Shown here in pieces: positions 1,271-64,000 of a stretch of 64,000 nucleotides of DNA. The position numbers and the translations under genes were made by a program. The stretch is from Octopus bimaculoides. Its lineage: Eukaryota. The notes below the pieces were generated by a model. The model did no database searches, had not been told where the DNA came from, and was given only the letters and a program-made list of their open reading frames with translations. Within the stretch, counting starts at the first letter, position 1; every line of letters starts with the position of its first letter. The DNA lies in contig NC_068994.1 of the NCBI RefSeq assembly GCF_001194135.2, positions 36,371,767 to 36,435,766 of the forward strand. Reading direction: 5' to 3'.

Positions 1271-4200
1271 TACACTTCCAAAAATGTAAAAGTGATTTGC
1301 CAAACAATATGTAATACTGCATCATTTCTGAAATATATTATATGATTTAGCACAATTAATTGTAAGTAAATTCTAAAAATAGATAAAGAACTAATATTGT
1401 TTTTTTTGGTTTTTGTTTATGATTTCCATAACTGAGAACAATACTTAGAAAATGAATATTGAAATGTCTATATTCACACAATGGATTTTGATAGTAATAT
1501 TATAAATTAAAATGAATTAAGCACTTACCAAAGAAGGTAAATAGTCTTCAATGTGTCATTAATTGAGATGTGTATCCTGCTGTAGAGTTATATCTTTACT
1601 GCTGCTGTTGTGTGCAAGCAGAACTGAGTGTCTTTGTATATGAAGTTGTGTAGGTATGAGAGTGAGGTCTGTAATTCTATCAAATATAGTGTGTATGTAA
1701 CGTCTGCGGCAGCCAATGACAGGCTGTTTATGGTTCCCATGGAAGGGAAACGGAAACTCTGCCTCTGATTCCTGCTGTAAAGAAGTAGATTTAATGAAGT
1801 GATGAGTCACATATAATCCTATAAACACTGTATAATACATATATGTATACATATTAAACTTGCTCTTTAATTCATACTAGAAGGTAGTGAAATTTACTTT
1901 AACTGTTTATTGAAAACAAATAAATGAAAGCTAAAAAAAATCAATATTTCTAAAAAAAATTTACCAAAGTTATCTTAGAATGGAAAAAGAAAAATTCTGT
2001 TTATTTAAAGAAGCTAAAAATTCAGTTATTTTAGTCTTTTCTCTCTTGCTTATCTTAGCATAGATTCATACATAGATATTGATTATGAAATATCTCAGTT
2101 AAAATTTCGAGTAGTCAGTATGAGAGTCCGAGAAATACAGATCTATGTCTCAGAATAAAGAATCAATAACATGGGCAGAGGGGATTATTGATTTTCTCAT
2201 TTATAGATAAGACCACTCTTCTATCAGTTTTATTGACAGTATTCTTCTTATGAATATTGTTAAATATTCTTGAAATTTTAATCTAATTATTGTTTTATTT
2301 TAGTGTTCACAAGACATTCAATGATGTATGTTGGAAAAATTTTATCTGTATTAGGTGTCAGTTGACAGTATATTAGAAATGTGCTTACTGAAACATTTTT
2401 AGAATTAGTATGTGGAATAATTAGTGTCTTTATTGATTTCATAAATAAAGGAATATTGTTCAATTGGATTAGTGCCAATCAAGCACCTTTACTTTGGAAG
2501 TATACCTAAGAAGAAAATGAAAGTTCAACATATTACAAGCAATTTCTGAGCAATTTATTTTAATCTTTTACAATGAAATTTTATATCTTATAATAATAGT
2601 GTCAGAAGTAATTTTATTGATATTTTGAGAATCATAACCTTGCTTGGAAGTTGGTAATCTTTCAAGGTGATTTATCCTATCTAAAACTAGAAATTACATA
2701 ATTTCAGGCACGTGAGCATAAGAATAACATTGGGTAGCTGAGCTTGTATGATCCTTTGGGAAGATTTAGTGTCTTCCCACAACTGTTAATGATTAAAAAA
2801 CAAAAACTTTGGCAAACTTATTTTGTTATTGACTTAATGAGTACTATTTTAGCTTTTGTACTTGTAGTCTATTTATAGAAAATTAGCTATTATATATTTG
2901 ATTTTACTACTGGACAAACATATTGATTAAATAACCCAATTAATTTCATTAGTATTGTGAAAGGTTTTGTAATGAATGTATCTGATAAAAATAAATATTG
3001 CTGAATATTTGAACCTTAACCTTACATTAGTAAAGAAAGACTTATTGATTATATTTGATTGTTATAAAAATATCAAAAGTTGTTATTCAAATCTAGTATT
3101 CAACTTGTAATGTCAAAAGGTTACAGATGTGATATTGTTGGTATTGAAAGTTTTTATCTCGACTGACTTAGTCTTGAATGATTTTTTAAATACATATATG
3201 AGTCTGAGGTATTTATGGCCTCATCAAGAGTGCATTGCTCCAATCAGGATGGTTTGGTTACTATGGTGACTATGTTTGTGTTGCAACATAAATAGTCTAA
3301 GTAACCTCACTGCTGTTATCTATTGCTAGCTAAGTTACTGCCATGGACATTAACTTATAACCAGTATTAACTGAATATTACTCTAATCAGCTAATGGTTA
3401 GGTACTATTATTGATAGCATTTTGATATTGTATGGAGACAATATGCAGTCAATAAAAGAGGTACTAAAAATATTTTCAGATTTTAACATATTGTAATGGT
3501 AAAAAAAAAATACTGTTAATACTGAGATTTATAGATAAACAATTCACCAATTTTTTTAAAACATCCTTCAAATATGCCAAAATGTAATGTTAAAATTCCC
3601 ACTACATTTCACAAGTAAACACAGTTTTAATATTTCTTCTATACTTAGCTAGGTTGACTGTTTGTGTGTTGATAAGAGAAGTTTAGAGAGGGAGAGAGAG
3701 AGATTTGTGTGCTGTCTGCAAGTGTGCATGCATTTATCTTTGGCTAATGATTTTTAACCTTTGCTGCATTACTGCAAATTTCAAGAGTTGATAGATTATG
3801 ATCATTTAACAAGAGTCAAAATTTTACCCATAGTGTTTGGGAAATAGATGTCACAGTCTTGCCCTTGAATTGTGTAACATCCAACATTGAATTTGATAAA
3901 TTTAAGACTACTTGACGAAAATCTTGTGAGTATACTAGTTCACTGCCAGACCTCTGTAATGCACTGGAGATCATACAAACATTAGTGAAGTAACTATTAT
4001 TACTGGTAGAAATGGTTGATAATTGGACTAAATGCTTTGCAATATTTAATGTCCAGATATTACCAGGGTTAACTTTCTTTTTCATCATCCTTCTAATGCT
4101 GTTGTTGTTTAGTCCATATCAAAGGTGTGATCAACCTATGATCAAAGAGGTCCCAAGTGTGACCATCTCATCTTGTTTTCAGTCATAGTGTATGTATAAA

Positions 4201-9800: not shown

Positions 9801-12800
9801 TTATGCTCCAGTTTTAACTTTTTATCAAGGAATTTTCATATACTTCTTTATTATTCATCTACATTCTGTTTATAACAATAAAAACTGCAATAACAACTTT
9901 TACTAAAATCATTTCATTCAAGTCTTTTCAATACCTCCCAGTCTTATCTTCTGGATGAAATGATTTCAGTAAAATTTGCTATTGCAGTTTGTATTGTAGG
10001 CGAGAATTATAGGAATGCTATTCTTTTTGTGTCTCATTTGTTATCATATGGAAATATGAAAAACTTTTAATAAAATTCAAAACTAATGCATAGTCATATT
10101 TTCAATAACACCCACCCACATACACATACGTACGCTGATGCACACATGTGCACATATGATCACACATTTCATATGCAAGTATGGAGGATGTAGTACTGCA
10201 AACTAGTTTCAGCATATGTAAAATGATTGTTTTGGTACTGTTGAAAGAGATTAGTGTCATGTTCCTATTGGAGGATGTTTTCAAGATAATTTTCATGGAA
10301 ACTGCAGCTTTTGTTTGATGTATCTTAAAAGCATATGGATAATGCTAGCATGAGGAAAATTAACTTTGGAGTGAAGAGTAGCATTATCTTTCTAGGAGTA
10401 CATGTAGCTAAAAGTGTCTATGAGGGTAATTTTTCTCTTATTTTTTGTCAGGAAGGAAGGAAGGCAATACCTTGACCCTTTACAAGCAAGTACTTTTGAC
10501 CACCTAGACTGGTGGGAGGGAGGTATCCTCTGATGGAAAAATGACCCAAAAGCTTGCAATAGAGTGGCTCTGCTAAAAGAACACCAAGGGCACTAGGTAC
10601 AAGGTTAAACAAGGTGAAGGATTAAGTCTACTATCCAGGGCAGGATTTGAACTCAAACAGACAAAGCTAGCACAAACACTGCAAAGCATATAGTATAGCA
10701 TTCTTATAGTTCTGCAAATCCACAACTTTAAGTTGGTAGTTTTTTATCAACCTCAAAAGAATGAAAGACCTTTGTTAAATTTGAATTCAGAGAACAGAGA
10801 GTTGGAACACATATCATGAGGCATTTCTGCTGATACAGAAAAAGGAGTGGGATACATGGTTGAAATCTTGAATTATATTGAATTTGATAAAAATGAACGG
10901 GAATGTTTCATTATCACACAAAATAGAACGATATGAATGGAAGCTTTCTGTGTAAGAGAATAGTGAAGAATAGCAGCCTATAAGCAGGCAGCTTAGGAGT
11001 TTCTTTTGGGTATATGTTTTACTGTTAAGGACAACATTCCTTCTACTGGAAAAGAAACAACTGTATTGTACTTTAGAATGATAAGTCTCCAGTAGATTTA
11101 GCTCTGAGTAAATTATACTAATATTCACTCAGATGTGATAGACAAAATATCAAAAATTATGAATATTTTCAGTTTTTTTCCTCCATCAGGGGCATATATC
11201 TTGTGTGTCGTTTGTGTTCACTGAACAGCAAATTCATAAATATTTAGCTCACTCAAGGATATAATTATGGCTTATATGAGAAATTAATTTTTTTGCTCTT
11301 TGCTAGGAAATACTGTGGCAGTTGTTCTATTACAATATTTCATAGCATTGCACACCCCACAGCTAACTTTATTATGATATGGCAATGGGCAAATAGGATA
11401 ATGGATGAGTGACAAAAATTAGGACTGAACAGTGAGTGACATTTTGTGTTTTGCTTTTTTTTTTTTTTCAAAGTTGCATGGATGAATTCAGCAAAAATTC
11501 ATCAAGAGAAATTGATTTCCTTTATAATAATTATGCTCTTGTAGTATCGTAATAGAATCTGGTTGTATTTTGTTTTCAAATTTAATAATACCCACTCAGA
11601 ATTAAAGATTAACTTGGGTCAGGGTCTGGTGTTGTTGATGTAACAAATTCAGCTGATATTTGCATTAGTTAATAAGTTTAGCCTGGCAAGTTGTGTGTTG
11701 ATATATTCACTCATTTTAATTATTTTCTTGATTAACCTTTTAGCATTCAGATTATGCTCTCAAATGTAATGCATATTTTTTCACATTGTTTTGAATTAAT
11801 AATGCATTGTCTTGTAGCTTCGAGATTTTGATGACATGATTGTTTATTTTTGCAATGACATTGTAGGGTAGGTGTGAGGGGTTGCATCTGGTTCATTTGA
11901 ACATAAAACAGGTAAAAATTTGGGGCAAATATGGCGAGTTTAAATGCTAAGGAGTTAAGTGGCCTATCAAAACAGCAGAGTGATGCAACTGAACCAAAGA
12001 AGCTCATTTTATAAAGTCATCATTGAACTGTTTAGTTCTCAAAATAAATGAATAATACTGATGTATAAATTAGTTAAATAGGTGAAATTATTTGGTGTTT
12101 TTATTTTCTACTTTATGTCTAAGTAGGTATGAATTTCATATAGTGTATACTATGGATGCAAAAGAAGTGTAATTCATAATGGAAATGCAGTTTATTTATG
12201 CATGACAATGAAGACCGTATGGACCAATATGGGCCATTGGACCCAAAGCTCGCAGAACCTCAAGCATTGGAGGCTCCTTTAACTCAGAGAAGCGTAAAGC
12301 TTGGGGCTAAAAAAATTTTTAAATATTTACAGTAATCAAATAATTTGTATTTCTTTTTACTTGTTTAAATTTGTTTTAATTAAGTAGAATTCTCTTCAAA
12401 TTATCAAGCTTTCTTTCAACTTATTTGACCCTTTAAAAGGCTATTAAATTTAACTTGAGGCTTAAAACAGTTAAAAGAGAATTTGTATGGAGTATAATAT
12501 GTATTTATGGTAGGTGGTAAGCAAAATAGAAAATACATAAATATCATCTAAATTAAGAAAGGCCTAATATTTGGGGATAAGCCTAATTTTAGATGGTAAG
12601 CCTAGTACAGTGATGCTGATTTAATACCACCACCTGGCCATTAAACACCTTTAGTGATGCTTATACTATTGCTAGCTTTCTGTCCTGGCCTCCAGTTTGA
12701 AAACCTTCAAAAATTTAGAACATTTTGTCAGAAGGCACAGCAGAAACATTTCTGAGTAGATTACTGTCACTAGACAGTAGGTAGGTAACATTTTGAAATA

Positions 12801-23584: not shown

Positions 23585-24154
23585 CATATACCCATTGCTT
23601 TAACATAAGTAATACTAAAATTACACTGCTATTGAGTATCTATATATACGTTTGCTTCATTTCACTAAGCGATATTTGCTTATGTAACTGCATGTAATAT
23701 ATAAACAAACAACGCACTTCTTTTGTTTGGTCTGCATCAAAAGGGTGACAATAATGTGAATGAGATGGGCTCAAGTTTTCACTACATATAAATGTAACTG
23801 GGATAACTGTATTTACAATGATTTTGTGTTTAGTAACAAATACAAACTGTATTAAAAATGCATTGGAGTGTGTGTACATATATAAATTTATTGGCAGTAT
23901 TTAGGTAGTAATTTTTCTTTGCTTTATAAATGCATGTTCTTTTAACATAATTGCACATTTCATCTTATTTAACATTTTCACAACTGACATTTGAGCTTTG
24001 TTCATGTTGCATGTCTTGCCAGCATTCTTCCCACAAACATGCCATATGTGTACTTATGCATTTACACAATAAGTATATATAATACAATGATATCAAATCA
24101 TTGTAAAACATGCTATCTTAAAGATACCATGTTTGCACTAGAGAATATATCATC

Positions 24155-24480
24155 ATCATCCTTTAATGTCTGTTTCCCATGCTGGCATGGGTTGGATGGC
24201 TTGACAGGAACTGGTAAGACCAGGAGCCGTATCAGGTTCCATAGTCTGTTATAGCTTGGTTTCTATGGCTGGGTGCCCTTCCTAACACCAACCATTCTAC
24301 AAGTGTACTGAGTGCTTTTTATGTGGCCCCATCACATGTGCTTTTACCATACTACTTTGGTTTTAAGATCTCAATTCTGTTATGGCAGATGGGTCTTCTA
24401 AAGTACAGAATTATGTTACATATCTTGGTCCTCTGCCATCTCCATTGTAAGGTTCAGCATTTTGAAGGCTGCTCCCAAAA
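24155..24480 (-). mobile_element. SINE with RTE-like (GAT)n 3' end
   Basis: CATCATCATCCTTTAATGTCTGTTTCCCATGCTGGCATGGGTTGGATG...GCCCTTCCTAACACCAACC. Homologues at ~17655, ~38520, 62295, ~63165 (same orientation) and ~26905, ~48150 (opposite orientation). Confidence 0.8.
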
Positions 24481-26904: not shown

Positions 26905-27075
26905 TATGGCAACCTCACTAGTGCTGGTGACATGAAAAAGCACCCACCACATTTTGTAAAGTGGTTGTTGTTATGAAGGGCATACAGCCATAGAAACTAT
27001 ACCAAAACAGATAATGAAACCTGATGTAGTCTTGTGTCTGTCAGATCCTGTTGAACCATCCAAGTTATGCCAGCA
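26905..27075 (+). mobile_element. SINE with RTE-like 3' end (partial)
   Basis: AAAAAGCACCCACCACATTTTGTAAAGTGG...GAAGGGCATACAGCCATAGAAA...GTTATGCCAGCATGGAA, the reverse complement of the 24155 copy. Confidence 0.7.
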
Positions 27076-27244
27076 TGGAACAAGGACATTCCCAGACTGG
27101 GCTGTGTGTTGTATTCTTGAGCAAGACACTTTATTTCATGTTGCTCCAGTTCACTCAGCTGAAGAAACGAGTTGTGACATCACTGGTGCCAAGCTGTATC
27201 AGCTATTGCCTTTCCCTTGGATAACATTGGTGGCATGGCGACTG

Positions 27245-38285: not shown

Positions 38286-38519
38286 ACTTTTATTCTTTTA
38301 TACAGTGAAGATGACTGCTGGAAAGTAAAATGTTTTTTCTTTCTCATCAGATCAGATGACAGCAAGTAGAAACTATTTTTAGAATAATGGCTGCTTCAAG
38401 CAATGTAGGAATTCATATGGTGTTGATATTTTTTTGCAAAGGCCATGCTGGCTGTGACTACTTTTGGTGCAATATTTGTGCTTACCTACATGATTGCTTT
38501 AACCTAACTTCTGACTACT

Positions 38520-38880
38520 CATCGTCATCATCATATGCCTGTTTTTCATGCTGGCATGGGTTGGACAATTTGACAGGAGCTGGCAAGGCCAGGATCTGCA
38601 CCAGATTCCATTGTCTGTTTTGGCTTGGCTTCTGTGGCTGGATACCCTTCCTAACACTAACCACTCCACAAGTGTATTGAGTGCTTTTTATGTGGGACCA
38701 TTATTACAGGTGCTTTTAACATGGTACCAACAGAGTGTACTGTAAGCTTTTTACATGGCACTAGCACCAGTGCTTTTTATGTGGAACCAGCATCAGTGTT
38801 TTTTACATGGAACCAGTACCTATGTTTTTTACATGGAACCAGTACCTATGTTTTTTACATGGAACCAGTACCTATGCTTT
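38520..38880 (-). mobile_element. RTE-tail SINE with internal 26-bp minisatellite
   Basis: CATGCTGGCATGGGTTGGACAATTTGACAGG...CCCTTCCTAACACTAACC, followed by TTTTTTACATGGAACCAGTACCTATG three times (38799-38876). Confidence 0.85.
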
Positions 38881-40585: not shown

Positions 40586-40756
40586 NNNNNNNNNNNNNNN
40601 NNNNNNNNNNNNNNNNNNNNNNNNNNNNNNNNNNNNNNNNNNNNNNNNNNNNNNNNNNNNNNNNNNNNNNNNNNNNNNNNNNNNNNNNNNNNNNNNNNNN
40701 NNNNNNNNNNNNNNNNNNNNNNNNNNNNNNNNNNNNNNNNNNNNNNNNNNNNNNNN
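40586..40756. other. assembly gap flanked by (TA)/(CA) repeats
   Basis: Run of N. Confidence 1.
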
Positions 40757-48149: not shown

Positions 48150-48365
48150 TTCTTCAGTTGAGAAGTTTCGTTCTGAAAGTTACTTGGTGACCTTGCTGCT
48201 GCTGGAGTCATGTAAAAAGTACCCAATACATTCTGCAAAGTGGCTGGTGTTTGGAAGGGCATCCAGCTGTAGAAAACCAAGCTAAAACAGACAGTAGAGC
48301 TTGGTGCAGTCTTTTAGCTTGTCAGTTGCTGTTAGAATGGAAAACTGATGTTAAATGATGATGAT
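48150..48365 (+). mobile_element. RTE-tail SINE
   Basis: GGAAGGGCATCCAGCTGTAGAAAA...GGAAAACTGATGTTAAATGATGATGAT. Confidence 0.8.
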
Positions 48366-48909
48366 TTATATATACACAAAGACATGTATACATTTATACT
48401 TATAAAGGCACATGCCTAGTAGTTCAATTCATGATTGTAAGGTCATGATTTCAGTTCCTAGATTGAGCAGATTGGGTCCGAGGTAGAGATATTTCATTAC
48501 ATACTGCTCCAGTTCACTTGAATGAAAAGGAATTATTTCTGCTGCAGAGTGGCACTTCACAGATTATTAGACAACAGAATTTTGAAAACACAAAAGCATG
48601 TGTCCATGATGGCTATTGCACAATGGATGATACACAGACGTACACATATACATACTTCATAGTCTTATATTCTGGATGAAGTTGTTATTAGTGGTGTTTG
48701 TTATTGCCACTTTTTTTTTATGTAGTGGGCTGCAAAGATCATGACAATGATGTTTTTACTGATGATATTGTTATAGGTGGATTAAAATTACTTTTGCCAC
48801 ATACTCAAAGTGACCTCCAGCAAATAGTAATTGTTCTTAATTTACTACAGGTTTGCTGTATATGTGTGTTAATTTTTGGTTTGCATTTTGTTATCAATAA
48901 ATCTTCAAT

Positions 48910-51997: not shown

Positions 51998-52049
<52 letters not shown>
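51998..52049. repeat. (TA)n microsatellite
   Basis: Direct read. Confidence 0.95.
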
Positions 52050-52050
<1 letters not shown>

Positions 52051-52788
52051 TAACAGTTTGACTTTCATATGCCTTAGAGTTTCTTGGGCACATAGGACAT
52101 TCATTCATCTCATCAGATTTTCAGAAGCAGAGTGGAAGGTTTGAAAGAAATTCAAGATGGCTTCAAGGTGTTCAGGTCTCTATCATTCAGCTCAGCTCAT
52201 CTGGTATTTAGGCTATGAAAGCAACACCAGTTACTTTTTAGTCCATGTATGTGGACATGATGGGCTATGGCATAGTGTATTCAGTGACATCAATTTCTTG
52301 TATTGGGTACTGCATATGGTGGGGTAAGATGTCGGTGTAAATCTGTAACTCAGTCATCATTCAGTGGAGTTTAAAGACATTAACAGTAGCAGACCGCCAT
52401 TTGCAACACCAAAGGAACTGATATCACTGGATATAATATGCTAGAACCCACTGTTAAAGTGGCACCACCATCTTGCCACTCTCCTGTCCAATCATGTGGA
52501 CCTAAATTTTAAAAAAAATAACTGGTGTTAGTTTGATAGCATTTGCGCCATGTAACCTGTGTTGATCAATAGAAGCCTAAACACCTAGAAACATCTTCAA
52601 TTTCTTTAAAATCTTCCACTCTGTCTCTGAACATCAATGAAATAGATGCATCCTATATGCCCATGAAAGTTTTAATCCATGTGGAGTTGAGTCAAATTAT
52701 TATTAAATACATGTAACTCCAACCAAATGTGTTGAGTGCTACTTTCTTTTGTTTGTTCACTTACTATATGTATGTATGTATGTACGTA

Positions 52789-52819
<31 letters not shown>

Positions 52820-52962
52820 ATGCGTGTGTGTGTCTGTGGTGGTGGTTGTGGTGTTTGCGTGCATGTATGTATGTATTCAGTTTACCACCCTTCTTTGACA
52901 TTTTGATTATTCAGAATGACACAAACATTGAAAGTGACATCTACTACAAGCCAATGGACTCC

Positions 52963-53318
52963 GTGGCTGTTTAGTAAAAAGCTTGCTTTCCAACCACAGG
53001 ATTCTTGGTTCAGTCTCACCGCATGGCACCTTGGCAAGTGTCTTTTACTATAGCTTCCGGCTGACTAAAGCCTTGTCAGCAGATTTAGTGGATGGAAACT
53101 GAAAAGAAACCTGTTATATGTGTGTGTGTCTTTGTTTGTTCCCCCTCCACTTGACAACTGGTGTTTACATCCTCATAACTTAGTGGTTCAGCAAAAGAGC
53201 CTGATAGAATAAGTGCCAGGCTTAAAAAAACTAAAGTTCATTCAGCTAAAAATTCTTCAAGACAGTGCCCCAGCATGACCACAGTCTAATGGCTGAAACA
53301 AGTGAAAAAGTAAAAGAT
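52963..53318 (+). mobile_element. near-full-length tRNA-head SINE
   Basis: TGGCTGTTTAGTAA (A-box-like), GGTTCAGTC (B-box-like), CACCTTGGCAAGTGTC, internal (TG)n, 3' CAGCATGACCACAGTCTAATGGCTGAAACAAG. At least four other copies in the window. Confidence 0.9.
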
Positions 53319-53914
53319 GCATGTATATGCACACATACATGCAAAGGAATTCTCTTGGTTTCAAATATCTGACTTACAAACAGCCACAATATACTTTACA
53401 TTATACTATAAAGGCAGTGATATTAAAAAAATTTCAGTTACTTGAAATGGTTGGTAGTAATTAATGGGAAGGTTACTTTGCAAAGCACATCAAAATATTG
53501 CAAGTTTTCAGCAATTTGTTGAATCAAAGAAGGAAATTGCTGTGCCATTGCCAGTTTAAGTCAGATCATGTAAACACTGTGTTGTACGTGTTATTGGTGT
53601 TATTTGGTTTAGATTTTTGTTTCTTTTGTTCACCCTCATAGCCATAACTCCAAAGAGTAAATTCAATGCAAGTGAAGGTGATGCATCAAAGGAAAGGAAA
53701 ATGATCACGATTAGTATTAAATTGGAAATATTAGAGTAGTAAGAGAGATGTGAAACAACAATGAACACATACCTACACACATGCAGTCTCACTCACTTCT
53801 CTCTCTTTCAGTTATAAATATTGAACTTATATTTATTATTATAGTTATCATTTTTATTATTAGAAATCATCATCATCAGTAGTAGTAGTGGTGGTGGTGG
53901 TGGTAGTAGTAGTA

Positions 53915-54344
53915 GGGCAGTGGGTTGATAGAATCACGAGAACATTGGAAGATATACATTGCAGTATTTTTCCCTAATGCACTTTGAGTTCAAATTCACC
54001 AAGGTCAAATATACCCCCTCCCCCAAAATTTCAGGCCTTGTACCTGTAGTAGAAAAGATTATTATTATTATTATTATTATTATCATTCTGGCCTTGTGCC
54101 AAACTTTGAAACCATTATTATTATTATTATTATGACAGTGAGCTGGTAGAATTGTTAGCACACCAGGCAAAATGCTTAGCACTATTTTGTCTGCTGCTAT
54201 GTTCTGAGTTCAAATTTTTCCAAGGTTGACTTTGCCTTTCATCCTTTTGGGTTGATAAATTAAGTACCAGTTTAGTATTGGGGTCGATGTAATCAACTTA
54301 CTCCCTCCCTGCAAATTTCAGGCCATGTGGCTATAGTAGAAAGG

Positions 54345-54377
<33 letters not shown>

Positions 54378-55062
54378 GCGAGCTGGCAGAATTGTTAGCA
54401 TGCTAAACAAAATGCTTAGTGGTATTTTACCCATTGCTACATTCCGAGTTCAAATTCTGCTGAGGTCAACTTTGCCTTTCATCCTTTCAGGGTTGATAAA
54501 TTAAGTACCAGTGAAACACTGAGGTCAATGTAATTGACTAGTCCCCTCCCGCCGAAATCGCTGGCCTTGTGGCAAAATTTTAAACCAATATCATTATTAT
54601 TTTTGTTATTATTAAGGATATGAACTGGCAAAATTGTTTGCAAGTTGGGCAAAATGGTAAGTGGCATTGTGGCTGTCTTAATGTCCTGAGTTCAGATTCT
54701 GCCAAGGTTGACTTTGTCTTTCATCCCCTCAAGATTGATAAAATAAGTGCTATTTCAGCACTGGGGGATCTATGAAATCAACTTTCTCCACCCCCAAAAT
54801 TATTGGCTTTGTGCCATAATTTGAAACCATTATTATTATCACTAAGGCAATGAGCTGGCAGAATTGTTAACAAGCTGGGCAAGATGTTTAGCAGTATTTC
54901 ACCCATCTTTACATTCTGATCTCAGATTCCATCAAGGTCAAGTTTGCCTTTCATCATCCTTTTGGAGTCGATGAAATAAGTAACAGTTGAGCAGTAGGTT
55001 TGATGTAATCAGCTAACTTCCTCCCGCAAGGTTTTAGGCTTTCTGCCTGTAGTAGAAAAGAT
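53915..55062 (+). mobile_element. head-to-tail array of (TTA)-tailed SINEs (5 units and a mini fragment)
   Basis: Units at ~53915, ~54134, ~54378, ~54614, ~54843 and a ~28-bp 3'-end fragment at ~54085-54112, separated by (TTA)n. Confidence 0.93.
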
Positions 55063-55242
55063 TATTATTATATAATTGTTCGACATTTGGTAGTTTAAGG
55101 CAAATTTCAACTGCATCACCTGCTACGCCTCCATGTTGCTGGAGCATGTGCGGCATTGTGTGTTGAGTGCGCAAACCCTTCCTGGTATTGTATTGTGTTA
55201 GTTCTTTTTGTTTTTTTGTTATCATCATCACCATCATCATCA

Positions 55243-56152
55243 TCACCCTGTGCACGTAAGTGAAGGCAAGGTATAGTAATCACTTGTCTTAGTCTGCTTG
55301 TCTGTGTATTTGCAAAATTACTAGAAATGGCTGAACAGATTTTCACCAAATTTGGCAGAAATACTCATTGGGTGAGTGGCTCGAAATGATGCCAATTTGG
55401 TTTCATTATCTTCAAAACATACATAAATACATACATAGATATGTAACTTTGTGTGTGTGTACAGTGATAAATTCAAGGGTTTCATTTATTTACGAGTTGA
55501 TTCCTTAATTTCACTGGCATATGAATACTTTATAACGGTGATACTTAAGAAAAATACAAAATTGAACTTACAAGTTTCCCAATAAGCAAGTGATCATATT
55601 ATTTATATCCTGCAATGAACTACAGTAGAGTTGATTCACTTGCCACCATTGAAAGACATTCAAAACACAATTCAAATTCTATGCAATATTTTCTATAAGT
55701 ACTTCATTTTGTTCACTTTTTTTTCATATGAATCAAGCCTCATTTGTGTGTGTATATAGATCATGGTGTATCTATGTGTGTAGACACGTGGGTACATACA
55801 TACCTGCATTCATAAATACATACATAGATATGCGACTGTGTGTGCGTGTGTGTGTGTGTGTGTGCGCACGTGTGTGTGTGTGTGTAAGTGCATATGTGTG
55901 TACAGTGATGGATTTGAGAGTTCCATTTATCTACGAGTTGATTTCTTAATTCAAATGAGTATAAATATCTATAATGGTGATACTTAAAAAAAAATCTATT
56001 TTAAAAATTGAACTTACAAATTTCCTGATAAGCAAGTTTAGTCAAACACTTACAAAGCTTAATTTAGTTCAATTAAAAAGTATAAGTAAGTATAATTTGT
56101 GAGAAATTTCTATTTGCATGCAGGGTATGCATCGCCCCGCTGATGCCTTTGT
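55243..56152 (+). mobile_element. non-autonomous Helentron-type element (HINE/DINE-1-like)
   Basis: 5' ACCCTG (55245), nearby AAGGTAT, GTCT-rich tract, GGCTGAACAGATTTTCACCAAATTTGGC, 3' CAGGGTAT (56121), hairpin GCATC-N8-GATGC (56129-56146), then a T-rich end. Confidence 0.6.
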
Positions 56153-56182
56153 TTCATTATTATTAGCATCATTATTATTATT

Positions 56183-57395
56183 AAGGTAGCAAGCTGGTTG
56201 AGCTATTAGCATGCCAAGTAAAGTGCTTAGCAGCATTTCATGTCTTTACATTCTGAGTTCAAATGCTGCTGATGTCAACTTTGCCTTTCATCCTTTTGGG
56301 GTGGATAAAATAAGTACCAGTATATCACCAGGGTCAATATAATTGATTTACCCACTTCTCTAAAATTGCTGCCAAAATTTGAAACCATCATTATTACTAT
56401 TATTAACAAAATAACATGCTGGCAGAGCCATTAGCATGCCAAGCAAAATCCTTTGTGGCGTTTCACTCATCTTTACATTCTGTGTTCAAATTCTGCCATG
56501 GTTGATTTTGTCTTTTATCCTTTTGGGGTTGGGTTGATAAAATAAGTACCAGTTGGGAATCGACTTACCCACTCCCTCAAAATTGCTGGTCTTGTGCCAA
56601 AAATTGAAATCAGTTATTATTACTATTATTAGAACAATAGATTGACAGAATTGCTAGAGCATCAGAAATGTCTTGTAATATTTCCTCTAACTACTTTACT
56701 TTCTGAGTTCAAATCCCGCTGACGTAAACTTTGCTTTTCACTGTTGCATGGTCAGTGAAATAAAATTCCAGTCAGGTTGTTGGGGTTGATTTGATCAACC
56801 CCCCACTTCTTAAAATTACAGGTTTCATGCCTAAATTAGGAACAATTAACCTCATAATTTTTATTAGCCAATGGATTGGCAGAATCATTAAACAGTTGAA
56901 CAAAATGCCATACAGTATTTCTGCTAGCTCTTTATGTTTTGAGTTCAGATTCTGCTAAGGTCAACTTTGACATTTATCCTTCAGGGTTGATAAAAAAAGT
57001 AGCAGTTTAGTACTGGAGGTCAATGTCATTGACTAGCCCCATCCTCAAATATGCTAGCCTTTTACCTAAATTAGCAACAATATTGTAATGTGATGAGCTT
57101 CAAATCTTGTAGTCAACTTTGCCTTTCATCCTTTCTGTATATAGAAAGTATGAAGTAAGTACTAGGGTCAGTAATCTCAACACACCCCTCCCACCACCTC
57201 TCATAATTACAGGCCTTGCACCTAAAATGGAAACCATTGTGCTGGCAGAATCATTAGCATGCTGGGAAAAACATTTAACAGTATTTTGTCTGGCTTTATG
57301 TTTCAAGTTCAAATTCTGCTGTGGTCGACTGGGGTTGATGTGATCAACAAGCTCCATTCCTCAGAATTACAGGCCTTGTGTCCATAACAGACAGG
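56183..57395 (+). mobile_element. head-to-tail array of ~6 (TTA)-tailed SINEs
   Basis: Units at ~56183, ~56410, ~56632, ~56870, ~57085 (partial), ~57240 (internally deleted). Confidence 0.9.
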
Positions 57396-57419
57396 ATTAT
57401 TATTATTATTATTATTTAT

Positions 57420-57980
57420 TACTATTATTGAGTGAGAGAGAGAGCAATGCAAGCCATCAAAGTGACACTGGGGAACAAATATATGATGCCCATCATGACT
57501 ACCTGTCTGATTAGGGTACACCAGGCACATGCATCACAACCATATGTGCACAACATGGTGACCTTGTATTAACATGTTGACCTTCTAACAACACAGGTGC
57601 AGTCCAGCTAGAATTTTCTCCAGGTTGAGTAGCCCATCCTGCTCAAAAGGTCCCTGAATAAGGGTTGTTTAAGGATGTTGGACGAAACACCCATGTTTCC
57701 AAAGGTGAATTATTCAAACCACAAAGAATTCCTCTCAACACATGGCTATGATGCTCTCCGACTACTTCTGCTCATGATCAAAGATGCACATATTGTCAGT
57801 GCCAAGGGACATGCTCAACTGGTTAAGGTCAAACAGCTGACAAGCAAATCTGTGGTATTGAACAAAATATTTGCTGTAGCCTATCTTTTATACGTTGACA
57901 AAACATGTACATGTTAACATTTTCAATCAGTTAAGATCAGAAGCTATGAGAACCAGTGCCTGGTACTGCATCAGGACATC
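57420..57980. mobile_element. unclassified probable interspersed repeat between microsatellite tracts
   Basis: Relatively GC-rich block bounded by (TTA)n on the left and (CAT)n(TTA)n on the right. No second copy in the window and no recognised peptide. Confidence 0.45.
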
Positions 57981-58009
57981 ATCATCATCATCATCATTAT
58001 TATTATTAT

Positions 58010-58290
58010 TTTAATCTGCATGTTTATTACAATCACTTACCGAGACACACCCAGCATCCTAGGGCGAGTGAACAATAAGAGATGTTACAACTGAAAGCTT
58101 GGAGAGAGGAAGCGGCAGTGGCAGTAGTGAAATATGTTCATGTAGTATGACACATACATTTAAATGGATAGGGTTTTTCTGAGGATGTGGGCAGTATTTG
58201 TCTGCACAATCTTTTGGATTTCTCTCTGACATAGTTCTCCTGGGATATTATCTAGATGTTTCTGACATCCCTTTCTTATAATACCTATTT
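58010..58290 (-). mobile_element. R4/Dong-clade 3' terminal fragment
   Basis: IGIIRKGCQKHLDNIPGELCQREIQKIVQTNTAHILRKTLSI* (stop 58162-58160) matches the typical RLE-element C-terminus EIQK.VL.GTAHILRK. Followed by a 3'UTR and a (TAA)n tail on its own strand. Confidence 0.85.
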
Positions 58291-58291
58291 G

Positions 58292-58301
58292 ATTATTATT
58301 A

Positions 58302-58383
<82 letters not shown>

Positions 58384-58400
58384 CATCATCATTATTATTG
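58292..58400. repeat. (TTA)n microsatellite
   Basis: Direct read. Confidence 0.97.
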
Positions 58401-58404
58401 TTTA

Positions 58405-58622
58405 TGTAGGTGGAAAATGGGCAGAATCATTAGCATGCTGTACAAAATGCTTAGTGGTAATTTGTCTGGCTTTACATTCTGAGTTCAAATTCTGCCAAGG
58501 TTAACTTTGCCTTTCATCCTTCCAGAGACAATAAAATAAGTAGCATATGAGTACAGAAGTCAATGTACTCGACTACCCAGTTCCCTAAAATTCCAGGCCT
58601 TGTGCCTATAGTAGAAAGGATT
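58405..58622 (+). mobile_element. (TTA)-tailed SINE
   Basis: GGCAGAATCATTAGCATGC...GAGTTCAAATTCTGCC...CTTTGCCTTTCATCC...GGCCTTGTGCCTATAGTAGAAAGG. Confidence 0.9.
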
Positions 58623-59296
58623 ATTATTGTTATTTTTGTTCTCATTGTTGTTGTTGCCATTTATGATTTAGATAAAATACGTATAATATACAAAGACAAA
58701 TACTTGACTAAAAGATAATAGATATGAACTATACATAATGGTTCCAACATGCATACAAATTTAACTTAGACAGATGTAAGACTGTCTACGTGAACCTATA
58801 ATATATGTTCATACACACATATTATGTGTATATAGCCATGTTTGTATGTGTGTGTGAAAGCAAGAAATGTTAAAATGACACATACCTTTGAATTTAAGAT
58901 TTTTCTCTCTTTGTCTATATTTTGTCTTTCAGTTGGTTGAGTACAGGAACTTTCAGGTATATCCAATTTTATTGTTTGTTTAGCAGAAGAATTTATATTC
59001 ATTGTCTTACTATTTTGTAATAAGTGTCTTTGAAGATCTGTTATTGAACTATATATATGTTGTGTGTGTTTATGTTTGTGTGCATATATGTATGCATAAG
59101 CATGTATATATGTATATCCTAGGGGAAATAAATATAGAATACTATATTCATTGCTTTGTATTTACTTGTGTTGATCACGTGAAAAATCCATCACTTTAAT
59201 TATGGTAAATATAGAAGTTTGGTTTTTATCAAATTCTCTTGTATTATGATTCAATGAAATTGTACATAAGTATGTTGGGATTTATGATTTTAGAGT

Positions 59297-59302
59297 TTTA
59301 TT
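59297..59302 (-). terminator. candidate polyadenylation signal AATAAA
   Basis: Canonical hexamer about 210 nt after the stop at 59514. The context is AT-rich, so it may be chance. Confidence 0.3.
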
Positions 59303-59513
59303 AAATTCTGTGTTATGGCATCCAAGTGGTTTTATCTTATTGAAAATTCTGGGTGTCATTATTCTCGTTTGATCAACAAACTCTTTCTTGATATTTTTGA
59401 AGCATTATGGTTTGAAAATTAGTTTTCAATAAAGTTGATTGTATGCAAATTCTTCATTTTGAAATATTACAAGAATTCACAAAACATTTCTCCAGGAGTT
59501 GTAATGTAGCACA

Positions 59514-59737
59514 TTATGAAAATGGAACTTTCGGTAGAGGTTTGTTATATGCTGTAAAACTGTTTCTTGTTGGCAAATTCCAAGGAAGAGGTTGGTTAAG
59601 ATTAGCTTTATTGTCTACTTGTGTTGACTTTAAGTTTATAATATTTGTGGTTTTAGAATCCTTAGCTCTGCTGATAGAGTATGGCAAAGACTTATTGCTT
59701 CTAGCATACATTTGTTCTTGGATGTAAGTTTTAAGGC
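59514..59737 (-). CDS. terminal coding exon, protocadherin-like cytoplasmic tail
   Basis: Long polypyrimidine tract ending ...CCTTTCTCTGCTGCAG then GC CTT AAA. The phase-1 start completes the G left by the upstream exon. 73 open codons (LKTYIQEQMYARSNKSLPY...NKPLPKVPFS) then TAA. The ORF track 59514-59711 is the same frame. Confidence 0.82.
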
Positions 59738-60383
59738 CTGCAGCAGAGAAAGGAAAAATAAGAAAGATGAAAAGAAATGTTAGCTATAATTTTTAACTAT
59801 TTTCACTATTTTTATCAGAGAAAATAAATTTGCTATTGAACACGTTATTAGCTGTGAATATTTTCGAAATAGTGCAATATATTTCAGAGAGAGAGAGAGA
59901 GAGAGAAAGGAAGTTGAGATTTGATAAATTGAGAGACATAAACTGATAGATAGAGAATTGTTACTTCTTTTGATAAAGGTATGCTATGATTGTATAGCAT
60001 TACTATAGGCTATAGTTGTACATAAGACAGCAAGGCCTAGGGTGGTATTCCCAATTCATCAGTAGCCAGCGGCTTAAAGTTCATTAATAGGTCATATCCC
60101 TGGTGACGAGAAAAGTTGTCTTGCAGCTGTGTGAGTGTATGCAGTTTCTCACAGAGGTTGAGTTAACAATTACAAACTCTAGATGAATGAGTAGCTAGCA
60201 GTATCCATCAATAGAGAAACTGAACTATCCTTTTGTTGCCACCAGAGCTATGCCCTATTAATGAACCTCTTGCCACTGGTGATAACCTGGAAATATCACC
60301 CTAGGTTTTGGTGGCCCAGGCAGAATTGCAGAATATATACTTCCTGTCGTCTCTAGCGAGATTATTGCCTATCCAGCATACTG

Positions 60384-61045
60384 TGGAGTCGTCCCATAAA
60401 TAATGCGATTTTTTTCACTTGCATGATCTAAAAAACGGAGTGAGGTGGGATAAACTAACTGCATCGACTTACTATAAAAGCTGGTCTTCGTCCATATAGG
60501 GTGTTCTTATCTATTTGGTGGGATATGAAAAGTTTAGTCCATTTTGAACTTTTAAACCCAAACCAAATGATAACAAAGAGATCTACTGTGAGCAGCTTGA
60601 GCAGCTTAAGTTAGTACTAGAAGGAAAATGATCATCTTTGGTTTCAAGACGAAAGGTGTTTTTCCATCAGGATAATGCTTGACCATAAACAGCAAGGATG
60701 ACATTCCAAAGGCTGGAGTAGTTTGAATGAGAAACGATTCCCCAACTACAGTATTTGCCAGACATTAACCCATCTAATTATCATTTATTCTGCAGTTTTC
60801 AAAATCATTTAGACAGAAAAAATAGGAATTCTGTAGACGAGGTCAGAACAGTACTGGAGGAGTATTTTTCATTATAGACAAGTGAATTTTGGAAGAGGGG
60901 CCTTGCAAGTGTACCAGGTAGATGGAAGAGCATTGTACAAAATGAAGGAGAGTATTTTTTTAGATTAAAAAAGAACTTTGTTTATCTTAATTTTGAAAAA
61001 TAAAAGTTGTATAAAAAAAACTGCATTATTTATGGGATGACCCAA
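60384..61045 (+). mobile_element. mariner, 5'-internally deleted, within the intron
   Basis: TIR match GTCGTCCCATAAATAATGC (60388) with GCATTATTTATGGGATGACCCAA-TA (ends 61045). Peptides VFLSIWWDMK (60501), FHQDNA (60662), YLPDINPSNYHLF (60752), RWKSIVQNEGEYF. Confidence 0.92.
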
Positions 61046-62294
61046 TATATATTTTATTGACAATTTTATTCCAGAATAGATACGTAACTGAAATTAAGAA
61101 CCAACTAGATAATTAATCAATAATTAATTAGATGATGATGATTAAGTCAGGTTTGATCACAAGTCACAATTATATATTTAAACTTAATATGAACGCAGAT
61201 AGACAGAACAGAATAAGCAAGGCAAAGGATCAAACATTAGAATAATGTGATAGGCAAGAAATACAAGAACATAGTATCCATGAGGAATATTTAAACTACC
61301 AGATAATTAATGTATATAAAATGAAATAAGATGTTTTCAGATAAATGAGGAGAAAACAAATTATTTGCACCATTGCATGAGCAAAAAGGAAGAAATGAAA
61401 GAAATACTTAATTTCTTGAACATGAATGTATGCACTGTAAAGGTAGTAATGAAAGGAAGATACAAATGTTTTATAGAGAGTATTCTTGATTAGACAAGTG
61501 CCAGTTTCGAAAAACCAATTAAAATTTCATTCAGTAGAACTGTACAATTCATAGATTAAATGTGACAGTGTAGCAGCCTCATTTGTATCCTGCCACCCCA
61601 AGTAACTATTATTCACTTTGTATTGCTATCAATGAGACTCACTTGAATTTGTTTTCTTTGCAATGTATTCTTTTCTTTTATCACTTTATCATTTGGAATT
61701 TGAAATAAGAGTTCTCATAGGTGTTGCAAGGCTCAATTACTGAGGCGTGAAATCACACTTTGTGTTCATTCAATTGCTTTCCTTTGTAACAGTCCAATTA
61801 ATCTCCCATTTAATGCTAAAATTAATCAAGTCATTTAAGGGGAAACTTTCAATTTAATATCTTTTAATAGATTTGCTTCTCTTGGAAGAAGAGATCTAAT
61901 TGCAAATTCCAACTTTTGGTTCTTAAATTAAATACATTAAGAAATGTAAGAAATCAATTTAAATGCATTGATAATGTCCTTGGGAAGTGTATAAAGATTG
62001 TAACATCCCATTTCTCCACTCCTAAAATGCATGAGTTTGGTTTGCTTAAAAAAGAAAAAGAAAAAAAAAAGAAAAGAAATGAAAAACCCAACCAATATTT
62101 TATTTATGTTATGCATAGTCAGTGGTTAAACTGTATCAGAAAGTTGATATCTGCTACCTAAGAAAGATATACTGCAGTTATTTTGTTACCTTCCTTAATC
62201 TCATGGTAGTATTTAATCCCCAAAGCACAAGTTAATGAAGCACTCATCACCTCAACTGTCTCTTTGCTGATAACAGCATTGAACTGCACCCTTC

Positions 62295-62402
62295 ATCATC
62301 ATCATCATCATCGTTTAACGTCTGCTTTCCATGCTAGCATGGGTTGGACGATTTGACTGAGGACTGGTGAAACCGGATGGCAACACCAGGCTCCAGTCTG
62401 AT
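62295..62402 (-). mobile_element. 3' fragment of RTE-tail SINE in the intron
   Basis: CATCATCATCGTTTAACGTCTGCTTTCCATGCTAGCATGGGTTGGACGATTTGACTGAGG. Confidence 0.88.
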
Positions 62403-62534
62403 TGTGCCTATTTATAGCTGAGGTTAGTATTTGTAAAAGGATACAACTCTCCAATTAGTGCATTGAGAATGAAAACATTTTAAACAAAGTCTCTTTTATT
62501 TTTGAAAGCATAAACATATACAAAAATAACTTAC

Positions 62535-62712
62535 CTGGTAATGTTTCATAGTGAGCAGTGCTTGCTTCACTGCAGCCATGTCCACTGTCAGTTACAGAAG
62601 ACATTGTTGACATCTCACTGAAACGGTCAGGAGACATAACCATATGTTGTTGATCTTTGCCGATGAAACGTGTTACTGAGAATTCTTGAGGGTTACCATG
62701 CATCAAGTTACC
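62535..62712 (-). CDS. internal coding exon, protocadherin-like cytoplasmic domain (CM1-like DSGHG motif)
   Basis: Acceptor TTTTGTTCTGATTGACACAG then GGT, donor CCAG then GTAAGT; 178 nt, phase 0 to 1. Peptide GNLMHGNPQEFSVTRFIGKDQQHMVMSPDRFSEMSTMSSVTDSGHGCSEASTAHYETLP-G. SSVTDSGHGCSE resembles the delta-protocadherin CM1 motif (DSGHGDS). Exon status is well supported; the family call is from motif recall only. Confidence 0.8.
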
Positions 62713-63454
62713 CTGTGTCAATCAGAACAAAAGTCGATTTCTTTTGAGAAAAAACAAACTCAATAATCATATAGAAAATACTTTGGATGACTTGGCAAAT
62801 CCCAATATATGTTAACACCCTGCAGGAGTAAAGCTGGATTTAAACTTAGACCATGAAAAGATGTTACTAAATACCCCTAACCCTGTGGGTTTCAACAAAC
62901 ATGAAAATATGAAAACATAAGTCATCAAATATATATCATAAACACTGAAACTGTGTATTAAAACAAAGCCCAAAGGTGTATAAAACATTAAAAAAAAAAA
63001 GAAGCAATTATCAGTGCCTTTTTTTTACTTACTGCTCTCTAAGTTAAAAATCTGTTACATATTTGACTAGTTTTAATACAAGAATAAGAATTACACTTTG
63101 GCCATTGTAGAAATATTAATTCAACTGAACATTATATTTCAGTAAATGAGAAATATCACTGGTTTTATATCTACTCTGTCCCTCTTGGCATGGGTTAGAC
63201 AAGACTTGTTGATGCAATATTCTACAGCCACATGCCTTCCTTTCTTGTTTTACAATTAAGGTATTTATTCCCATGCTTTCCCATACAGAGTGACTCAATG
63301 ACTAGACCTGTTTTAATAGCAAGTGTAAATAATGTCTCTGATTACGTAGTGGTATTGCATTATGCTTTAAGTGCATAAACAATGCCAGGACATAGGAAGA
63401 CATGATCACATGCGGTAGGCTTTAATACAGTTTTCATCTACTAAATTTCATTCA

Positions 63455-63821
63455 TTAAACATTGGTCAACCTGAGGCTATAGTAAATGGCACTTGCCCAT
63501 GGTGCCATGGAGCAGGGATGAACCTGAAACAATATCATTTCAAAGCCACCTGCTTAACCACACAGACATGTCTGCACTTGAAATACCTTAAAAAAATTTC
63601 AACAAACCACTGTTAATTATTCAAATAATCAAACCCAGGACTTATTCTTTGTAAGCCTAGTACTTATTTATTGGTCCCTTTTGCTGAACGGCTAAGTTAT
63701 AAATGCACCAAAATTGGTCGTCAAGCAATAGTGGGGGGACAAAAACTCACACACACACACACACACACACACNNNNNNNNNNACCAAAATTGGTCGTCAA
63801 GCAATAGTGGGGGGACAAAAA

Positions 63822-63883
<62 letters not shown>

Positions 63884-64000
63884 CGACAGGCTTCTTTCAG
63901 TTTCTTTCTACCAAATCTACTCACAAGGCTTTGGTCGGCCCGAGGCGAAAGCAGAAAACACTTGCCCAAGGTGTCATGCAGTGGGACTGAACCCAGAACC
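63455..64000 (-). mobile_element. tRNA-head SINE copies with internal (CA)/(TA) tracts, one across a gap
   Basis: CACTTGCCCAAGGTGTCATGCAGTGGGACTGAACCCAGAACC at the window end and CACTTGCCCATGGTGCC at ~63490. Confidence 0.88.
63773..63782. other. 10-N assembly gap with duplicated flank
   Basis: 63707-63772 is repeated immediately after the gap. Confidence 0.95.

Follow-up and report, generated by a model that had tools for sequence, protein, structure and literature searches.

Two terminal exons in an Octopus bimaculoides genomic window as the very probable 3′ end of a three-exon protocadherin gene with its own cytoplasmic tail

Near the end of a 64,000-nucleotide stretch of the Octopus bimaculoides genome (contig NC_068994.1, positions 36,371,767 to 36,435,766; this whole stretch is called the window here), two exons on the minus strand encode a peptide of 133 amino acids (aa) that matches the C-terminus of a protocadherin. 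We consider it very probable that they represent exons 2 and 3, with which the coding sequence of a conventional octopod protocadherin gene of three exons ends, and that the tail they encode is private to that gene. Homology, exon structure, colinearity and purifying selection were shown by comparisons between sequences, and all argue for this reading. The features in question, with lengths in nucleotides (nt), are the following:

62713..64000, minus strand: 3′ part of intron 1, at least 1288 nt of which lie in the window; acceptor AG at 62714-62713
62535..62712, minus strand: exon 2, 178 nt, phase 0 to 1, with canonical acceptor and donor; product GNLMHGNPQEFSVTRFIGKDQQHMVMSPDRFSEMSTMSSVTDSGHGCSEASTAHYETLP(G), containing the motifs SxxDSGHG and YETLP
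59738..62534, minus strand: intron 2, 2797 nt, GT-AG
59514..59737, minus strand: exon 3, the terminal exon; its coding part measures 224 nt with the TAA stop codon (59516-59514); product (G)LKTYIQEQ...NIINLKSTQ...PWNLPTRNSFTAYNKPLPKVPFS, then the stop
59214..59513, minus strand: putative start of the 3′ untranslated region (UTR), the 300 nt after the stop, 97% identical to Octopus vulgaris

Joined together, exons 2 and 3 form an open reading frame (ORF) of 133 aa with the C-terminus NKPLPKVPFS. With a slash marking each exon boundary, the acceptor of exon 2 reads ...ttgacacAG/GGT and its donor CCAG/GTAAGT, while a long polypyrimidine tract leads to the ctgcAG acceptor of exon 3. Since the reading frame is closed upstream of 62712, exon 2 must be an internal exon, entered in phase 0. 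The initial annotation of this DNA had given the same exon coordinates and phases, the same GT-AG intron of 2797 nt and the same join, and all of these hold, with canonical splice sites. It had also stated that the window contains no cadherin ectodomain; in agreement with this, a tblastn search over the 64 kb found no such coding sequence, and the part of intron 1 in the window (62713..64000) contains no cadherin-like ORF.

The identity of the gene is provided by O. vulgaris, in which the C-terminus of a 932-aa protein annotated as "protocadherin beta-15-like isoform X1" (P0079) is identical to the window peptide at 132 of 133 positions, the sole difference being M4 in the window versus V. Cadherin families of Pfam match P0079, and its locus (L014; GCA_951406725.2, OX597827.1:4,811,964-4,844,033) has the following structure:

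L014 10001-12397: exon 1, 2397 nt, ending in phase 0; signal peptide, cadherin repeats and transmembrane (TM) helix
L014 12398-15834: intron 1, 3437 nt
L014 15835-16012: exon 2, 178 nt
L014 16013-21846: intron 2, 5834 nt
L014 21847-22070: exon 3, 224 nt

The window and this gene have in common the lengths of the two terminal exons (178 and 224 nt), the intron phases, the exon 2 acceptor, which reads TTTTGTTCTGATTGACACAG/GGTAACTTG in both, and colinear flanks. They differ in intron 2, which measures 2797 nt in the window and 5834 nt in O. vulgaris, and in that exon 1 can be seen at the O. vulgaris locus, whereas in the window gene it falls outside the 64 kb. Window positions 52034-63631 align colinearly with L014 31879-14898 at 87-95% identity, and the window therefore represents the locus orthologous to L014 in a related Octopus species. 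Within this alignment, window 62418-63631 is 93.5% identical to intron 1 and exon 2 of O. vulgaris (L014 16130-14898), and the non-coding DNA of the window is 5-13% diverged. In L014, a further 2.5 kb separate the last aligned base from the end of exon 1, where the donor reads ...CAA/GTAAGC, so the exon 1 of the window gene would be expected about 2-2.5 kb past position 64000. There is also an orthologue in Argonauta hians (P0083), whose tail is 87-88% and whose ectodomain is 80% identical to the Octopus counterpart.

These data bear out the proposal, made in the initial annotation, that the two exons are the 3′ end of a protocadherin gene, as the near-identical relative of the peptide is an annotated protocadherin with the same terminal exons and not a protein of another family. 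An ectodomain exon upstream of 64000 had also been anticipated, and this is supported by exon 1 of P0079 in the colinear L014 and by P0083 of A. hians. Given that an annotated O. vulgaris gene has the same exon lengths, phases and boundaries, and a product differing at one residue, the two-exon structure is far beyond what chance could produce.

The comparison with O. vulgaris also indicates that the coding sequence of the tail is under purifying selection. There are 14 nt differences in 402, which affect 14 of 134 codons, 13 of them synonymously and one non-synonymously. Exon 2 contains 11 of these differences, including the non-synonymous one, and exon 3 contains the other three, all synonymous. 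Against the paralogue P0001, discussed in the next paragraph, the ratio of non-synonymous to synonymous divergence (dN/dS) of the window tail is about 0.2. Downstream of the coding sequence, the 300 nt that follow the stop are probably conserved 3′ UTR, since their 97% identity to O. vulgaris compares with 63-87% in the introns; candidate poly(A) signals after the stop are an AATAAA at 59302 and an ATTAAA at 59200.

Searches with the tail led to a wider set of octopod relatives. A Pfam scan of the 133-aa peptide and 20 related tails gave no relevant family, even at E <= 10, and a word-index protein search with the peptide gave a single match, P0001, missing P0079. P0001 is an "uncharacterized protein" of 124 aa from O. 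bimaculoides itself, encoded on an unplaced scaffold of 19.8 kb (L001), and it has the same exon junction, ETLPG/LK, as the window. A profile built from the window peptide and P0001, used in an exhaustive HMMER search of cluster representatives, found 18 matches, all of them octopod where the source was traced and most of them short models consisting only of a tail. One of them, the 957-aa protein P0011 of O. vulgaris, has five Pfam cadherin domains (Cadherin, E = 1.8e-71), and the profile meets its C-terminus at E = 8e-11. In its gene, exon 1 (2391 nt) extends from the signal peptide to the juxtamembrane region and ends in phase 0, exon 2 (151 nt, phase 0 to 1) has the donor CCAG/GTAAGT, and exon 3 is terminal. 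Exon 2 of the window is homologous to that of P0011, and the window exons share the intron phases of this gene, 0 before exon 2 and 1 before exon 3. The window tail itself belongs to a second subtype, of the form ...HYE[TE]LPG/...[VI]I[DN]LKS...PWNLPxRNSFTxYxKPLPxVP. In A. hians, the model P0003 has a complete protocadherin first exon of 803 codons with a phase-0 donor, which is spliced to such a tail 36 kb downstream. When the full Argonauta protein (first exon and tail) was used as the query, more than 4000 protocadherins were found, and many of the top matches were full-length octopod proteins with the tail subtype of the window.

Two other interpretations of these relatives were considered and rejected. 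The first was that the second subtype represents an "orphan" tail, as two loci (L003 and L004) have no cadherin exon within 18 and 35 kb, respectively, and a third (L005) has a first intron of 36 kb; dozens of full-length protocadherins, however, bear such tails, and the length of intron 1 varies among octopod protocadherin genes from 3.4 kb to about 36 kb. The second was that P0001 is the orthologue of the window gene. The introns of the two do not align, the synonymous divergence (dS) is 1.8 in exon 3 compared with 0.2 in exon 2, and P0001 has orthologues of its own. P0001 is thus a paralogue, with full-length orthologues in O. sinensis (P0064) and A. hians (P0046).

In the model that we favour, transcription would start upstream of a first exon of about 2.4 kb, located some 2-2.5 kb past the end of the window, which is upstream on the minus strand. 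This exon would encode a signal peptide, cadherin repeats, a TM helix and approximately 100 juxtamembrane residues, ending in phase 0. Splicing would then remove two introns, the first of 3.4 kb in O. vulgaris and the second of 2.8 kb in the window, and add the 133 distal cytoplasmic residues; short linear motifs in this tail, which is predicted to be disordered, might link the adhesion receptor to signalling, trafficking or turnover. The diversity of octopod protocadherins would arise by duplication of whole genes, each of which has its own tail. Such an arrangement has parallels in the literature. The expanded coleoid (octopod) family described by Albertin et al. 2022, Wang & Ragsdale 2017 and Styfhals et al. 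2019 resembles the window gene in having several exons, of which one large exon encodes the ectodomain and the TM helix and is followed by small cytoplasmic exons, as well as in full-gene duplication and in tails that are particular to each gene. Large first exons and full-gene duplication have both been reported for cephalopods, the latter by Albertin et al. 2022 (PMC9068888).

Several considerations weigh against this model. Exon 1 lies outside the window, and its presence would follow from the orthologue and from colinearity; splicing in O. bimaculoides is likewise a prediction, based on conservation and on the gene models of other species. The functions suggested for the motifs derive from short consensus patterns, and the tail has no match among Pfam families or solved structures. 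In addition, in some isoforms of paralogues in RefSeq-style models, exon 2 is retained and a different short exon is the terminal one, so some transcripts of the window gene may lack exon 3.

The initial annotation had raised the possibility that the two exons are constant exons, shared by several alternative large first exons that would be arrayed upstream and each be spliced to 62712. There are reasons to take this idea seriously. Everything upstream of intron 1 lies beyond the view offered by the window, octopod protocadherins do have large first exons with phase-0 donors like those of vertebrates, and the orthologous locus was inspected only 10 kb upstream of exon 1. Nevertheless, the only cadherin exon of L014 precedes exon 2 by 3.4 kb; the 10 kb upstream of exon 1 and the 10 kb downstream of the gene contain no further one, and neither do the 59 kb that lie downstream of the gene in the window. 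In a compact cluster of O. vulgaris, exons 2 and 3 are present separately in the P0011 gene and in its downstream neighbour, both of them complete, and a partial copy upstream of P0011 in the same cluster carries an additional set of these exons. We also compared the tails of 37 full-length protocadherins from four octopod species. In 193 same-species pairs, no tail was common to two proteins; the maximum tail identity was 70.7%, in a pair with ectodomains that are 72.5% identical. In cross-species orthologues, tails are 76-89% and ectodomains 80-89% identical. Given that the divergence of the tails tracks that of the ectodomains, the two seem to duplicate and diverge together. On the genomic and annotation data, no tail was found with two or more first exons. 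Furthermore, Albertin et al. 2022 (PMC9068888) stated explicitly that in cephalopods several first exons are not joined by splicing to a common set of final exons. The idea of shared constant exons was thus not borne out, and we regard such an array at this locus as very improbable.

The comparison with vertebrates is instructive in this regard. In clustered protocadherins of the alpha and gamma types, as in the octopod gene, a large variable-type first exon encoding the ectodomain, the TM helix and a short cytoplasmic stretch is followed by small 3′ exons. The vertebrate 3′ exons, however, are constant and shared across an array, whereas those of the window are private to one gene, and the window tail has no similarity in Pfam (E <= 10) to the constant-region or cytoplasmic protocadherin families of vertebrates. 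Convergent evolution of constant exons is not supported. A weaker version of the same idea is that unannotated large first exons located further upstream, or those of neighbouring genes, could occasionally be spliced to 62712, in which case the tail would serve more than one ectodomain. We see only a slim chance of this, but if it were true, it would represent a vertebrate-like use of constant exons that is hidden from current gene models.

Equally slight is the probability that the exons form an orphan or decaying 3′ fragment, either a tail that was duplicated without its first exon or the remains of a gene recently inactivated in this species. Such an origin would agree with the fact that exon 1 is not visible in the window, with the many tail-only "uncharacterized protein" models of octopods (for example, P0001, P0002 and P0021), and with the mention by Albertin et al. 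2022 (PMC9068888) of fragmentary protocadherin reading frames that may be pseudogenes. It is difficult to reconcile, however, with flanks that are colinear with an intact orthologue to within 2.5 kb of its exon 1, or with two intact exons that have canonical splice sites and a ratio of synonymous to non-synonymous differences of 13:1. The tail-only models, for their part, are fragments of annotation, as two of them open with an artificial 3-nt "ATG" exon and P0001 has the full-length orthologues mentioned above. Finally, the tail could be that of a non-cadherin gene whose likeness to protocadherins is limited to short motifs, as the lack of a Pfam match and the "uncharacterized protein" returned by the first word-index search might suggest, but a tail with a nearly identical counterpart in an annotated protocadherin, with the same exon structure at a colinear locus, effectively refutes this and leaves it a negligible probability.

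The three-exon model with a private tail also provides a context for the tail-only proteins. On the basis of the loci compared here, many octopod proteins of 60-280 aa annotated as "uncharacterized" or "hypothetical" are exons 2 and 3 of protocadherin genes, detached from exon 1. The O. vulgaris models P0002 and P0021 open with an artificial exon of 3 nt, "ATG/GT", located 8 and 25 kb upstream (10001-10003 in both L003 and L004), which supplies a start codon to what is really an internal phase-0 exon. Another observation concerns the region downstream of the gene. In the O. vulgaris annotation, the next protocadherin model (859 aa, same strand) begins 516 bp past the stop, at L014 22586, which corresponds to window position ~59006. 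Past the start of this model, neither the next 9.5 kb of L014 nor the 59 kb that remain of the window contain a cadherin-coding exon. The start may be a distant 5′ exon, a product of read-through or an artefact of the model.

With respect to the tail itself, an AlphaFold2 model based on an alignment of 20 sequences had a mean pLDDT of 57.9, a pTM of 0.14 and no secondary structure, which is consistent with a disordered region; given its low confidence, we used this model as an indication of disorder only. A PDB sequence search with the tail profile gave a chance match only. The conserved positions of the tail cluster in short motifs. Of these, IINLKS, WNLPTRNSF and KPLPKVP of the window match the octopod motifs [VI]I[DN]LKS, WNLPxxNSF and KPLPxxP; the last two, and also the first, occur in most of the 37 full-length octopod protocadherins. 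Further motifs of the window tail are SxxDSGHG, YETLP, PWNLPxRNSFT and the C-terminal KVPF. Judging by pattern alone, KPLPKVP may represent a ligand of SH3 domains, as it fits the class I consensus [RK]xxPxxP. We likewise assume that YETL, which fits the YxxPhi sorting pattern as well as SH2-type patterns, could be a sorting or SH2-type site, and we take RNS to be a site of the basophilic-kinase type. KVPF fits [RK][VI]xF, although this is a pattern of only four residues; Styfhals et al. (PMC6339937) counted the [RK][VI]xF pattern, attributed to PP1, in octopus protocadherins. Apart from this PP1 pattern, the published octopus-specific protocadherin motifs are located only in EC1, EC5, EC6 and the TM region, and the tail motifs YE[ET]LP, [VI]I[DN]LKS, WNLPxxNSF and KPLPxxP are absent from the published descriptions of octopus protocadherin motifs that we consulted.

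The initial annotation had based its family assignment on a DSG(H/R)G motif, which it ascribed to the CM1 region of delta-protocadherins. This argument receives partial support, as the motif is found in protocadherins of other animals. The window contains SSVTDSGHG, with the core S-x-x-D-S-G-[KHR]-G. In Xenopus, the delta2-protocadherin PAPC carries this core in a conserved cytoplasmic region, the DSR (peptide MGHISTKDSGKGD), and phosphorylation of its two serines by GSK3 leads to beta-TrCP binding and ubiquitination, controlling the localisation and stability of the protein (PMC4291225). A zebrafish protocadherin with SSKDSGHGDS and an oyster protocadherin with DSGRGGS carry the same core (supplement of PMC6339937). 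I-S-T-K-D-S-G-K-G-D of PAPC and S-S-V-T-D-S-G-H-G-C-S of the window thus have S-x-x-D-S-G-[KH]-G in common, both in a cytoplasmic position. The likeness is limited to this 8-residue motif, as the D/S-rich run that follows it in PAPC is absent from the window, in which the sequence after DSGHG continues as CSEASTAHYETLP and is not D/S-rich. Moreover, only about 8 of the 37 octopod paralogues have retained DSGHG, and a published Fuzzpro search found none of CM1-3 in O. vulgaris protocadherins. It is conceivable, though we consider it rather unlikely, that S-x-x-DSG[HKR]G is an ancient bilaterian protocadherin degron, common to octopod, oyster and vertebrate delta-protocadherins. If this were true, it would contradict published claims that octopus protocadherins lack cytoplasmic motifs like those of vertebrates.

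Exon 2 shows an unexpected pattern when paralogues are compared. The core of the exon, its 3′ two-thirds, was compared between window 62535-62643, L001 7137-7245 and L014 15904-16012. The nt identity of this core between the window and the L001 paralogue is 98.2%, so that the paralogue is as close to the window as the O. vulgaris orthologue is, or closer. Exon 3 of the L001 paralogue, in turn, is only ~72% identical to that of the window (with the dS values given above), and the introns do not align. Similarly, the Argonauta paralogues P0046 and P0083 share Argonauta-specific residues in exon 2. These observations suggest that exon 2 alone undergoes concerted evolution (gene conversion) or, alternatively, that its synonymous sites are under an unusual constraint; Albertin et al. 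2022 (PMC9068888) mention homogenisation, with which the pattern agrees. A comparable case is found in exon 1, in which a segment containing TARMYTAEDTESDNRIHINLMIIIVVAAVIVSVAIVVS, at the end of EC6 and in the TM region, is near-identical across genera in paralogues that are otherwise 50-60% identical (P0039, P0044-P0046, P0053, P0055, P0064, P0079, P0080 and P0083). By the same kind of comparison, this block appears to be locally homogenised or strongly constrained.

The remaining observations concern repeats and the assembly. Intron 2 contains the remnant of a transposon:

60388..61041, plus strand: degraded, internally deleted mariner, 654 bp

Its terminal inverted repeats of 28 nt (60388-60415 and 61014-61041) are 89% complementary, and its translation matches residues 206-344 of the Mos1 transposase at E = 1.4e-21 (phmmer against PDB). 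What is left is the C-terminal half of the transposase, interrupted by stop codons; Pfam gave no match for it, also when the stops were replaced by guessed residues. The orthologous intron of O. vulgaris aligns to most of this element, and an extra 2.6 kb adjoins there. Copies of a short interspersed repeat are located at 62301-62403, 24149-24331, 26916-27090, 38519-38704 and 48200-48397, with 72-78% identity to copies in L001 (near 380-560 and 3520-3700); the copy found in intron 2 adjoins a (GAT)n run. A 544-bp stretch at 2133-2673 is 86% identical to L001 18893-19430, is not colinear with the gene, and is probably a dispersed repeat. The overall GC content of the window is 33.7%. There are assembly gaps at 377-843 (467 N), 40586-40756 (171 N) and 63773-63782 (10 N), and microsatellites such as (TG)n, (ATT)36, (CA)n and (AT)n are abundant (55837-55901, 58292-58399 and 63748-63883). 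Gaps of variable length and microsatellites of this kind are typical of an octopus assembly scaffolded from short reads.

The gene described here is of an octopod protocadherin type that was already known and has an annotated orthologue of identical structure. The value of this analysis is therefore mainly one of annotation, as it places the 3′ end of a known type of gene in the window and predicts the position of its first exon. There are three modest by-products of use. The first is an explanation for many tail-only "uncharacterized" proteins of octopods as detached exons 2 and 3 of protocadherin genes, and the second is a set of conserved short tail motifs. As a third, the motif that resembles the DSR of PAPC leads to a testable hypothesis, according to which the levels of octopus protocadherins could be controlled through GSK3 and beta-TrCP.

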